Positions 26,642-31,675 of a stretch of 64,000 bases of DNA are shown one piece after another (the first letter of the stretch is position 1; each line of letters starts with the position of its first letter). Location of the stretch: assembly GCF_033153115.1 (NCBI RefSeq), contig NW_026889757.1, positions 5,394,001 through 5,458,000 on the forward strand, in the 5' to 3' direction. Source of the DNA: Saccostrea echinata (lineage: Eukaryota). Below the pieces are notes generated by a model, which had not been told where the DNA came from, did no database searches, and saw only the letters and a program-made list of their open reading frames with translations. Both the position numbers and the translations under genes were made by a program.

Positions 26642-29600
26642 ATGATTCTAAGTAGTGTAAACTTCGTTAAAACCAGCAGCCGACAACAAAAATCTCATTT
26701 TGACTTCAGTGATTTTATTATTGGAAAAATTAAAGAGGAACAGGAGAGACAAGAAGGATGCAATAAGTGTGGATCGCCGGCGCAAAATGTAAGTAATTTT
26801 TATCTCATGTTCAAATTCAAATTACCCTGGTGCGTGTTTTCTATGTGGTTAAAACACACCAGGCTCCGGGGCCATAAAACTGAGACGAGCTCACTTTTGA
26901 TCTTAGTCTCACTTTTCCACTATATATTCCTTTTGTTAAGTGAGACTAAGATCAAAAGTTAGCTCGTCTCAGTTTTATGGCTCCGGAGCCAGAGTTGAAT
27001 ATACATATCTTACAGCATTATATTGTCAGTATTTTTCATTTTGCTTGTCTTTTGCTGTATGAAACATGTCATAATTGATCCATTTATTGTTTGGGCATAC
27101 CACTTTTAATATGTTTAAGGTCACAGATCTACATATTGTATCAGTAGGGCTCCTTTTTTCTCTTGAAATATTTACGAAATTAGGAAATTCCTTGTATTAT
27201 CCTCTATCAATTGAAGCATAAGAATCCGGGAGAGTTCCGTTATCTTGATGAAGAAAAAGAGCTAAATGTGCACGGAATTTTGTCGGCGCTGCATCCTTTA
27301 GTGCGATTACATCACTGAAATTCCTGTGTTGTGACGACGGGAGTTATGTTTGCTATATACATCGATTACTGGAAATATTGTATAATTGAATCTGATTGGT
27401 TTCCCTAACGTCTTGTATGTTGTCAATTTGTTGCATGATATTTTATAATGATGTTTTCGTCAGAAATCGACTCCAGGACATACGTGTCAACTTAAATGTA
27501 TAATTTCATCCTCCCCATCAATAATACGGTGTGAAGGACAGGAAAATGGGGAGGATGCGTGCTGAACTTTTCTTCCTCTAATTCTTGGTTGTAGAACTGG
27601 GTCAGTATGCATAGGGAGGGGTGTAGTGGGAGGGTAAATGGTGCTATTTAGGTCACTTGACAACAGGTGAAGGAAAGGGTTAATAAAACACCTGTCTGTA
27701 CAACAGGCGGTACGTGCTCGGGGTACCCTATGACTCAGTTTTAATCCTAATCTGAGAATAATCCTAATATTACATACAGACACTCTATTTAGTTAAATAC
27801 AGAAATTCCGGTGCCGACCACAATTACGAAGAAGGAATGTAAAAATTTCTCATCTCCATGAAAACTGTCCAAATGTAGGGGACTGATATTTACTTTGGCG
27901 GGCGGGGGCTATTTAAGATCTTCAATCTCTGAACAATAGGCCTTTTTAAATGCTTTGCATTCTTAACAAATTATATAAATGTTTATTCATCATACTATAT
28001 TAGCCTGTCGAATACTTGATTTAAAGGGTGTTGAGTTGGTATATAGGTGTTATCAGTGTGTTGAATAGATGGTCGTTCTAAGGTTGTATTTTTAAGAGCC
28101 TTTATCGCTTGATTTTTGTTTAGATTGCCAATAGGCGATTTTAAGATTGATTAGATGGTATATGGATGGATACATCAATATTGAAACCTATTAGCCGTTT
28201 AATGAAAAGAATTTATTTAACACTAATCCGCTACATCCATTTTTAGAACAAAATTAAGTGATCCTAAATCCGGGCCAGACAAACATGATTTCCTTATTTT
28301 TAACTAAATATACTGAAAAATATAGGTACTTGGTTTAATTTACTGAAGAAATAATGAAAAGGTAATCGGCTGATGAAAAAACATGATGTAAAGTAAATAT
28401 TGTGTTGTCGTTATGCAATCGGCCTAAATACATTTACCTTTGATATCATCACTCTTATTTTTAGATCAAAAAGCCCGAGAATATTTGTATGTTATCTTTA
28501 TTTAGAAACTTACCTGTAGAAAGATTTTCAAAGTATATAGTCAGCGGGTCTATAAATGAAATAAAAGATTCCATTTAATATCGTTTACAAGTAATAATGG
28601 GGGTAGACCTGAGGTATTTTGTTGTGACATTTAACACTTTCTGCCTGTATCTCCAAAACAAAACGCTGCCATATTCTGTTTATAGGATGACCCCTGGAGG
28701 GTATAATATTTCACCCCCAACCGGTGCGATCCCCCTGGGTCCATAGACAGTACATGCATTGTTCAGGAATAGGCTTTGTCAATTAATTACACGTCTGCTG
28801 ATTTCATTGTGTTGAGTGCATTACCTTTCGCTGACATTTTTCAAAAATTTAAAATTTTTATGCTGTCAATTTGCGTAATGTCCCGTGTCACTTTCTGTAG
28901 GGGGTTACAATGTTACATCAACAGTTTACCATGTTTAGTGCAATTGACCAAGCAATTTCAATAGATTTTTAATTATTAAATTTTTTTGGGTCAATTTTAG
29001 GCGAAGAAAAGTGAAGTAAACAACCCATCCTCGGCAAGAACAAGCTACACAGGTAATTATTACTAGTATATTATTTATATACCGATATAGACAGGTCGCA
29101 ATTTATAATAATTAAAGAAATAGTAGGGACAAAATAAAAAAAAAATGATTTTGTTTATATATAGAAAGCATCAAGAGAAGACACTCAGCCCAGAAAGAGA
29201 ACAGTTCCAATGTTACAGTAGAAACCAAAGACGGTTACGTGGTCAGCTTATGTGAGGAACTTAACCGCATATACCTCGGAGATGTAGAGGACCCTAACAA
29301 TTCAAGTAAGTCACTTGCCTTGTTCAGTAATAACAATGTTAAAGATCTTTTGAAAATCTTTGGGTAAATTTTTAAAAGCTGCCACTCTGTTAAGAAAAAA
29401 AATGCCATTGGTGTTTAACACTACATGTATTTTCATTTATGTATTCATGTCTCCCCTTCTCTATTTTCCTTAATTATTCTATTACATGTACACACGTAAG
29501 TGTCATTCTGATAAGCCAGTTGACTTAAGGAAATAAAGAAACTTGTTACAAATTCAGAATCACCTTATCATCAGATATTTAATAGTTTCCTGAAAAAACC

Positions 29601-31675
29601 CACAATACCTTCAACTACAACAGAGAACATTGCGATAAGTTTTAGAAGTTGTGTGCTATTTTTAATTTTTATAATTATTGATTTATTTATTGTTTATTTT
29701 TGTGTAGAACAAATACTTCATATGCTTAATAATATAGCCTTCTTTGGTTAAAAAAATATTACAGTGTACAACGTGTACAAATTCAAGGAAGTTAATCTAA
29801 AAATATCACAAAATCCAGATGTTTCGATGGCCTAATTACTTTTACATCAAGGAAGGGACATTTGATAAACAGTTCTCTGTATTTCGAGTAAATTTTAAGG
29901 ACATGAAAAAATATAAATCACATACTAGTGTGTGTACGTCTGAATTTTTACATTTTACGCATTGTTTTAAGACAACCCGCTCAGTTTCTTTAAAAAAAAA
30001 AGACCGAAGGATGTTGTCTAATGAGTTGCTAAGTATTTTATTAGAATAATATATATATTCGCTAATAATGACACTGGTGAAAATGGAAAACAAATTACGA
30101 ATTGTTTCCTCATTATACACAGTGGGATGCAAATAGGTGATGATTTGGCCAATCCTGATGATTTCCGGTTCTATATTGATAAATCGCATAATTTAACCAA
30201 TTAGTGCTTCAAATGTTTGGTGAGGTGTATAGAGCGGGTTCGTGGAGAAGATGAAGACCAAAAAAAAATTATTTTAATTCAGATTCATATATCTGTTTGT
30301 TTGTGTTATAAATACGTATTAATTATGTCTGAACTAATTAATGCCATATAAACTATCCCAGTACAAGGACACTTCATAAATCGTACGATAAATTCCACCT
30401 GTGGCTTCGACATAAAAAATGTACCAAAAAAACCGCAGTCTGCCAGGCATTGGTTATATTGTATTTTTACTGTTTACTGGTCAGCGAAGTAGACAAGGAA
30501 CTTTCTCACACGTTTTTCGTTGACCATTCTTCGATTTTCACGGCAGTATGGCGCGGTTTATCCTTGTTTATGGTACTATCTGTTGACATTACTATGGATT
30601 TCACGACCACAACACATTATCCATACTAAGCATGTCAACCGTCATCGCACAGTATTATACAATGCGAATGACGTGTATAGCTATATGTTTCTGAAGACGG
30701 TCCTATGAGAATTTTTCTCCGCTGCTCATTACCGATTAGTTATATAAATCTATAATTACGAAAGTAATTGCATAAAATGTCTCGATATATCTGGATTTTC
30801 CAGGTATTGGATAGAATTCCAAGGAATCGTAAACAAATTTGAATAACAACTATTTTTTTCTTCACAAACTAGTTGAAACAAGTCTTGAAATTCACCTTCC
30901 CGGTCTTTTATCACATCGTTCTTGTTAACCTAGATTTTTCAAATGTTTTGCATAAACTGTCATCATTAACTTATTTTTTTCTTTTCCTTTTAGACATATT
31001 TCGTCAGACAAAACATGCACTTCAGGACGGAGAAAACTCCACCGAATTCTGCACATTCCGACTCCACAGTCGGGGGGACCTGTACCTGTCCGTGACCCCT
31101 GACCGGGGGTTAGCGGTACACCAGTCAGAAACCCCCGTGGATCCCCAGTCTCCAGATGACAGATGCTTCATAATGCATCCAGTATCAAACGGTAGTGTCT
31201 TCATCCAGCCGTACCATCATAAAGGTATGTACATTTTACATCCATATCAACAACCTGTTGACAAAAAAATGGAGCTCTCGTTCACAATCAGTCATGAAAT
31301 CTATCGATTTTCAATATATATATCGGCTATGAGTTTTATTTCTTTTTACCATAACTTTACTCAGTTTTTATTTACCGGTTTCTTTTAGGTTATTATCTAC
31401 ATCATCTTGACAGAGCTTTGTCAGTCACGAAATTGGAAATCAACTGGAGGCCCCCTGAGGAATATTTCTTCAGTATCGGTGTAGTCGATGTCCCCGATCC
31501 CGAGGTGTTTGTGACCCTAGAGGACCTTGAAGATGTTCCCGTCCAGAAATCAAACCCCATCATAGAAGAATCCTCCCCCATCAAACCCAGTCTTTTCTGG
31601 GGATGTTTTGGCGGAAAATCCAAGAAGTTATCATCCAAAATTAAGAAAACAATCAAACAAACGTCTCGTGTCTAA
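26642..31675 (+). CDS. Candidate IL-1-family (beta-trefoil) cytokine-like protein, 285 aa. Exons 26642-26788, 29001-29052, 29165-29305, 30994-31224, 31389-31675
   Basis: Four GT-AG introns join in frame (858 nt), with no signal peptide. The core VTVETKDGYVVSL..IYLG..NIFRQ..CTFRLHSRGDLYLSV..LAVH..DRCFIMH..VFIQPYHHKGYYLH..LSV..EYFFSI parallels the IL-1beta strands. The gene model is solid; the family call is by eye. Confidence 0.75.
26863..26989. mobile_element. Palindromic MITE (PIF/Harbinger-like) in intron 1
   Basis: ~52-bp near-perfect TIRs GCTCCGGGGCCATAAAACTGAGACGAGCT..; CAG target-site duplication. Confidence 0.85.

Follow-up and report, generated by a model that had tools for sequence, protein, structure and literature searches.

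A single-copy oyster gene encodes a leaderless protein with a predicted β-trefoil core and conserved ends

Can an oyster protein be assigned to the interleukin-1 (IL-1) family from a trefoil-shaped core and a missing leader? The question is raised by a gene of Saccostrea echinata that lies in a 64,000-nucleotide (nt) stretch of forward-strand DNA (NCBI RefSeq assembly GCF_033153115.1, contig NW_026889757.1, positions 5,394,001 to 5,458,000). We call this whole stretch the window and number positions from its first letter. A preliminary description, made from the sequence alone, had proposed that the gene codes for a mollusc IL-1-like ligand. The proposal held for the fold, the absent leader and a lean toward IL-18 and IL-33, but it failed tests of sequence and architecture. 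A trefoil fold and a missing leader are insufficient for an IL-1 assignment, and membership of the oyster protein in the IL-1 family is possible but unproven. The explanation we put forward, to which we give an even chance, is that the protein may be a cytosolic, probably membrane-tethered trefoil that acts as an intracellular adaptor.

Gene structure, transcripts and bivalve relatives

The gene is read from the + strand in five coding exons (858 nt in total, encoding 285 amino acids, aa), and all of its introns begin with GT and end with AG (Table 1). We examined its splicing in assembled contigs of public RNA runs, which are informative on splicing and not on level, tissue or induction. The joint 26788>29001 (GT..AG) occurs in RNA contigs of X1, X2 and X5. 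The second joint, 29052>29165, is also present in RNA contigs (given there as 29050>29163, with the cut moved by +2), as are 29305>30994 (GT..AG) and 31224>31389, the last of these in X5. A single 1708-nt X5 contig crosses all four joints, and contigs of X1 and X2 cross three. These spliced RNA contigs demonstrate that the gene is transcribed, and we conclude that the five-exon oyster gene is genuine and expressed. An in-frame stop codon at 26600-26602 makes the ATG at 26642 the earliest possible start. At the other end of the gene, an X5 contig (record 23) runs unbroken from 31387 to 32148, with about 450 nt more in the record. An alternative split with a 92- or 95-nt exon 2 and an acceptor at 29205 was ruled out by the RNA, in which exon 2 is 52 nt long and exon 3 begins at 29165. 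The clean five-exon, 285-aa gene predicted in the preliminary description is thus borne out by the RNA joints, none of which lacks a supporting contig, and by an end-to-end match to an orthologue.

Two of the introns contain additional RNA signals. Contigs of X1-X3 cover most of intron 3 without interruption (29440-31023, depth 3-12) and reach into exon 4; they could represent unspliced pre-mRNA, intron retention or DNA carry-over. Intron 3 also holds an antisense open reading frame (ORF) of 115 aa at 29842-30189. In intron 1, a short interspersed repeat (26856-26933) reaches a summed RNA depth of up to 2209. This signal comes from dozens of unrelated contigs from all four runs, which overlap the repeat over 44-68 nt at 90-95% identity and then continue into other sequence.

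Orthologues were sought with exon 4 within its stop-free 171-aa open frame. Exons were used singly for searches, and the joined spliced translation was used for pairwise identity, hydropathy and the tree. The exon 4 search returned full-length annotated orthologues in Saccostrea cucullata (284 aa), Ostrea edulis and Crassostrea virginica. The S. cucullata orthologue (LOC134253797) aligns end to end with the spliced translation at 92.6% identity, and the Ostrea and Crassostrea orthologues are 81-84% identical to the window protein. The orthologue in Crassostrea gigas is LOC105319146. We built a family hidden Markov model (HMM) from five oyster sequences and searched it against 1.84 billion representative proteins. 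This search identified 48 representatives at E<=1e-3, and a second profile search added further members. Every named match in both searches is a bivalve protein. The named members span oysters, Pinctada, Mytilus, scallops, Tegillarca, the unionids Potamilus and Sinanodonta, Mya, Mercenaria and Mactra; all are labelled "uncharacterized" or "hypothetical", and none has a Pfam domain.

A FastTree phylogeny of 37 full-length members divided the family into two subfamilies. Subfamily A, which contains the window gene, is characterized by an N-terminal helix and a polybasic tail, and its tree tracks bivalve phylogeny. All subfamily B members seen come from unionids, Mactra or unnamed sequences. One copy of the gene is present in the 923-Mb genome: searches as permissive as E<=10 detected no second copy or remote paralogue there or in the window. 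Two to three paralogues, with neighbouring locus tags or on the same contig, are present in Potamilus (P0017, P0018 and P0021), Mactra (P0029 and P0100) and Mya (P0028 and P0089). This arrangement suggests local duplication in unionids and heteroconchs, versus one copy in oysters. The Mytilus protein has a shorter annotated isoform (253 vs 312 aa). We also searched the literature by family accessions, and none of the accessions searched was named in any paper in the searched library. This is an apparently undescribed family, so far found only in bivalves.

The trefoil core and tests of IL-1 family membership

The structure was modelled with AlphaFold2 on the orthologue P0001, which served as a stand-in for the window protein. 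An alignment of five oyster sequences gave a mean predicted local distance difference test score (pLDDT) of only 32.6, and a deeper alignment of 45 sequences was needed. Window numbering equals P0001 numbering plus 1 from the extra residue Ala47 onward. In the resulting model, residues 79-221 form a 12-strand β-trefoil with block pLDDT values of 91-97. The ends and both linkers are low-confidence, except for a helix at residues 21-38. On this model, we regard it as certain that the core is a trefoil. The preliminary description had divided the protein into an N-terminal region of about 80 aa and a β-rich core of about 140 aa, staking its proposal on a trefoil of 12 strands. The orthologue model agrees in each respect, with lengths of about 78 and 145 aa.

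We compared the modelled domain to known trefoils. In a Foldseek search against the PDB, the top 12 matches were IL-18 and IL-33 (E 4.4e-7 to 1.3e-6), with template modelling (TM) scores of 0.70-0.79 by target length. Other trefoils had E values from 2e-6 (Symfoil designs), 9e-6 (CBM42), 1.5e-5 (IL-1β) and 3.5e-5 (FGF2), and all structural matches listed were trefoil or trefoil-containing chains. VIA-align scored IL-18 at 18.1, the lectin HA33 at 18.2, and FGF and fascin at 16-17, with Z differences of less than 1 unit counted as ties. The aligned length was 138 residues for IL-18 versus 121-128 for FGF types. Language-model features of the domain ranked fascin and fascin/FGF/FRG1 clusters first (0.90), followed by ricin B and IL-18 (0.89), and matched only trefoil families. 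In these model-based comparisons, IL-18 best covers the domain and IL-18/IL-33 appear nearest in size and shape, and the structural scores tie between trefoil families. The Foldseek check suggested in the preliminary description had a mixed outcome: IL-18/IL-33 came first and no FGF, fascin or lectin trefoil was clearly nearer to the domain, but the other structural scores were tied.

Invertebrate homologues of IL-1, termed IL-1anc, have been reported by Fontenla-Iglesias et al. 2026 (PMC13736523) and include bivalve proteins. IL-1anc proteins are defined by a PDZ domain at the N-terminus plus a C-terminal trefoil with an F/LES motif on strand β9; several IL-1anc genes are present per bivalve, and a small subset of them lack the PDZ domain (PMC13736523). 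This is a published account of the kind that the preliminary description had mentioned, and the view of the IL-1 family as vertebrate-specific is therefore outdated. The oyster protein could be a highly diverged true IL-1 member: a PDZ-less relative of IL-1anc, nearest to IL-18/IL-33, that would be stored leaderless in the cell, released upon damage or pyroptosis and signal through an Ig-TIR receptor. This is an unlikely explanation in our judgement, though still a serious contender. The few PDZ-less IL-1anc genes, the Foldseek ranking and a leaderless protein with an N-terminal extension before a trefoil of about 145 aa are all consistent with it, but the structural ties with lectin, FGF and fascin trefoils and most of the tests that follow argue against it.

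Profile searches returned one family of matches in the direction of IL-1. No Pfam model reached its cut-off in any of 45 relatives, and PF00340 (IL1) gave no match in the relatives. PF15095 (IL33_bt) is the sole trefoil Pfam model that recurs. It matched four of the 45 relatives (P0018, P0093, P0095 and P0038), none of them from an oyster, and the four matches are colinear and in register over profile positions ~57-140 of 158. The best of them scored 17.5 bits (E 0.0042), below the cut-off of 27. Genome-wide scans with PF00340 and PF15095 did not touch the gene. Family profiles searched against PDB sequences returned no trefoil, and so no IL-1, at E<=10, and none of the family's matches among the 1.84 billion proteins searched by HMM was a PDZ-trefoil protein.

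The architecture of the protein also differs from that expected of an IL-1 member. Strand β9 (window aa 182-186) reads V-F-I-Q-P, placing FIQ where IL-1 proteins carry F/LES, and Gln185 and Pro186 are invariant or nearly so family-wide. The PDZ domain is absent from all 45 members by Pfam. The trefoil is not C-terminal, being followed by a conserved tail of 62 aa. Asp is absent from aa 25-88 of the window protein, leaving no caspase site ahead of the trefoil; caspase maturation on the N-terminal side of the trefoil was ruled out on this ground. A DVPD sequence does occur downstream of the trefoil, with Pro at P1', in oysters only. Finally, the ends are conserved like the core and the oyster orthologues are 81-93% identical, unlike the fast-evolving IL-1 proteins.

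The motif pairs drawn between the oyster protein and IL-1β fall on the expected strands (β1, 4, 6, 8, 9-10 and 12), but they follow the generic hydrophobic pattern of cytokine-type trefoils. The reported lack of a signal peptide was upheld by Kyte-Doolittle hydropathy, which detected neither a signal peptide nor a membrane span; the top 19-residue mean is 1.09 and lies within the trefoil, and the N-terminal hydrophobic run is 9 residues long. The trefoil is coded by three exons, with phase-1 introns before β4 (codon 114) and between β9 and β10 (codon 191). The phase-1 intron directly ahead of β4 would suit an IL-1 gene. IL1B and FGF genes alike have a phase-1 intron at this place, so it would not separate the two families.

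Conserved modules and a candidate intracellular role

We calculated column conservation over the 45 sequences and found conserved modules at both ends of the protein as well as in the trefoil (Table 1). The N-terminal peptide is kept in most, but not all, family members. Identity in the N-terminal module is 82-100% among oysters and 42-60% to other bivalve orders, which equals or exceeds that of the trefoil. The CxxC motif after the helix (C-N-K-C, aa 40-43, 26759-26770) is also found in Pinctada and several subfamily B members, but mussels and scallops lack it; a role in metal binding or redox chemistry is conceivable. The third trefoil repeat is the most conserved stretch in the family, with residues D168, R170, F172, Q185, P186, Y193, H195, H196, D198, N209, R211, P213, E214 and E215 invariant or nearly so.

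The C-terminal tail contains Cys263 (codon 31604-31606) and a polybasic run with 8 Lys/Arg and no Asp/Glu in 22 residues. With a single exception, the full-length relatives have a Cys-Phe-Gly motif or close variant 9-22 residues from the C-terminus. In subfamily A the Cys motif is followed by 5-9 Lys/Arg and at most one acidic residue. Among oysters, identity is 89-100% in the tail and 85-93% in the trefoil, and both linkers drift. Ends conserved like the core fit poorly with a disposable propeptide or a fast-evolving secreted cytokine; as a sequence pattern, this fits a whole protein that would work inside the cell. The oyster proteins end in -S-R-V (codons 31664-31672), an ending that is not kept outside oysters. 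It fits the class I PDZ-ligand pattern, S/T-x-hydrophobic, and is noteworthy beside the PDZ domains of IL-1anc proteins.

How might such a protein act? We propose that the working unit is the entire protein rather than a propeptide and a mature cytokine, and that it would remain cytosolic. S-acylation and membrane binding are commonly signalled by a Cys that has hydrophobic and basic residues next to it. Because of this general signal, we propose that the tail may tether the protein to the inner face of a membrane through an S-acylated Cys and its basic residues. In the third trefoil repeat, the conserved face with its polar HH.D...R.PEE residues would bind a conserved partner or a small ligand. 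Such an adaptor could be likened to the intracellular FGF-homologous factors (FHFs) or to lipid-anchored hisactophilin. The bivalve range of the family's named members, its single copy here, the constraint on the whole protein, the Cys motif and basic residues of the tail, the lack of a leader and of a caspase site, and the failure of every IL-1, FGF, fascin and lectin Pfam model to reach its cut-off support an adaptor role.

Several observations weigh against this proposal. IL-18 and IL-33 are the top Foldseek matches, and the IL33_bt matches, given that 45 queries were made, amount to only a lean toward IL-1 on sequence grounds. Leaderless IL-1 family members are likewise cytosolic or nuclear before release. 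The tails of subfamily B retain the Cys but are weakly basic. In addition, a nuclear localization signal is an equally possible reading of the polybasic tail.

The last of these points leads to a different explanation, that the protein belongs with the intracellular or nuclear trefoils of the FGF/FHF or fascin/FRG1 type, its tail directing it to the nucleus as in FRG1, and acts on chromatin, RNA, the cytoskeleton or channels. FRG1 likewise has a central trefoil between basic ends. Many subfamily A tails contain RKKK or KKKK runs, the family is under strong purifying selection, and the language-model features rank the fascin and fascin/FGF/FRG1 clusters first. However, no Pfam match to FGF (PF00167), Fascin (PF06268) or FRG1 (PF06229) was found at E<=1 in the 45 members, the alignments to FGF-type trefoils are shorter than that to IL-18, and what the whole family retains of the tail is Cys-Phe-Gly rather than the basic run. 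We consider an FGF- or FRG1-type protein quite unlikely.

The grouping of invariant His, Asp, Arg and Glu residues in one repeat raises a further possibility. The protein could be a leaderless trefoil lectin or small-ligand binder, similar to the cytosolic bivalve lectins SeviL and MytiLec or to CBM42/AbfB modules, in which the third repeat forms the single active pocket. One family member, P0018 (aa 170-247), aligns to the arabinose-binding CBM42 chain 3kmv_A through G-Y-Y-L-x-H, at an E value (0.22) that is not significant. In this overlay, G-x-V-F-I-Q...G-Y-Y-I-H-H is set against the repeated G-Y-V-S-I-Q...G-Y-Y-L-R-H. The QxW triplet pattern of lectin repeats is absent from the window protein, and no Ricin_B or AbfB Pfam match was found in the 45 members. 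The conserved terminal modules and single copy are also unlike the expanded lectin families of bivalves. A lectin is, in our estimation, very unlikely.

Tethering and an IL-1 identity could also be combined. The family could be a second, PDZ-less branch of bivalve IL-1 proteins close to IL-18/IL-33, held at the inner leaflet by an acylated Cys/polybasic tail and freed by damage or proteolysis as an alarmin. Such a combination strikes us as improbable, about as much so as an FGF- or FRG1-type protein. If it were true, bivalves would have a lipid-tethered form of IL-1-type ligand that is not known in vertebrates.

Whichever explanation applies, the family is old, given that the subfamily A tree matches bivalve phylogeny, and in oysters it is under strong constraint and kept as one copy. 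It couples a cytokine-shaped trefoil with a probable lipid/polybasic membrane anchor, which would represent a new architecture on a known fold. If it is related to IL-1, the invertebrate IL-1 repertoire is wider than the PDZ-trefoil architecture, and oyster immunology gains a ligand candidate that can be tested. Otherwise, the family would provide an intracellular trefoil adaptor of a new kind, whose putative binding face is clear and conserved.

The rest of the window contains mobile-element and zinc-finger sequences (Table 1). A transposon-like block extends over 1142-6579. The 186-aa zinc-finger frame probably derives from a zinc-finger gene nearby, as one of its exons. Ig-TIR, TRAF3, GCC2 and ESD were not found among the long ORFs of the window, a view that would miss multi-exon neighbours. 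Two runs of N are present, at 33124-33257 (134 bases) and 37806-37942 (137 bases).

Table 1. Coordinates of the trefoil gene, its conserved modules and other features of the window (CDS, coding sequence; UTR, untranslated region)
Feature	Position	Strand	Basis
5' UTR, minimum extent	26609..26641	+	X2 RNA contig (record 8) begins at 26609
Exon 1 CDS, aa 1-49, followed by phase 0 intron	26642..26788	+	Orthologue tblastn; RNA joint
Exon 2, 52 nt, aa 50-67, Ser/basic disordered linker	29001..29052	+	RNA joints; pLDDT <50
Exon 3, aa 67-114, RRxS site then strands β1-β3	29165..29305	+	RNA; model
Exon 4, aa 114-191, strands β4-β9	30994..31224	+	RNA X5; exon-level HMM E 2e-24
Exon 5 CDS, aa 191-285 and stop: β10-β12, acidic linker, C-terminal tail	31389..31675	+	RNA; HMM E 9e-23
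3' UTR, minimum extent	31676..32148	+	X5 contig (record 23)
N-terminal module, aa 1-40: M-I-L-S-S-V-N-F-V peptide, FSDFI.GKIKEEQ helix, then CxxC (aa 40-43)	26642..26761	+	Alignment, model
β-trefoil coding span, aa ~78-223, two introns within	29197..31486	+	
Third trefoil repeat, aa 168-215, most conserved stretch of the family	31155..31462	+	Column conservation
C-terminal tail, aa 257-285: hydrophobic-x-G-C-F-G, then polybasic run	31586..31672	+	Alignment
491-aa ORF, SAM domain and weak FYVE match	1142-2617	+	
HECT fragment	3681-4073	+	
448-aa ORF, rva_4 integrase core, weak SAM match	5233-6579	-	rva_4 E 3e-74
186-aa open frame, at least 4 C2H2 zinc fingers	54329-54889	+	E 3e-21
Intact 343-aa Tc1/mariner-type transposase ORF	62216-63247	+	DDE_3 E 6e-19; HTH_Tnp_Tc3_2 E 7e-14

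Comparison with known trefoil proteins

We compared the oyster protein to trefoil proteins from other systems. The IL-1anc proteins are leaderless invertebrate trefoils reported in bivalves, including Pecten maximus and Crassostrea virginica, and their trefoil is coded on 3-5 exons (PMC13736523). The oyster protein differs from them in having no N-terminal PDZ domain, no C-terminal placement of the trefoil and no F/LES motif. The trefoil of PmaxIL-1.1 is located at aa 126-290 (PMC13736523), and this protein is therefore not the 287-aa Pecten member of the oyster gene's family. For C. virginica, CvirIL-1.1 or CvirIL-1.2 (PMC13736523) could correspond to LOC111100805.

The comparison with IL-18 and IL-33 (PF00340 and PF15095) gave differences in sequence, architecture and conservation. 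Neither model matches at cut-off, and on β9 the oyster protein carries FIQ rather than FES. The oyster family has a 62-aa Cys/polybasic tail and a conserved N-terminus, lacks an Asp-type site ahead of the trefoil, and is very highly conserved and found in bivalves only. The FGFs, both FGF11-14 and FGF1/2, are distinguished by the missing PF00167 match, by a core that is about 20 residues shorter and by the lack of a Cys/polybasic tail. The R-type lectins botulinum HA33/HA1 and bivalve SeviL differ from the oyster protein, which has no QxW pattern or Ricin_B match, and HA33, a secreted protein, is a tandem trefoil from a bacterial toxin complex. Hisactophilin of Dictyostelium, for which no sequence similarity to the oyster protein was found and which is absent among the structural matches listed, is a single cytosolic trefoil that a lipid anchor holds at the membrane. 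This anchor is a myristate at the N-terminus, whereas the anchor proposed for the oyster protein is a C-terminal Cys.

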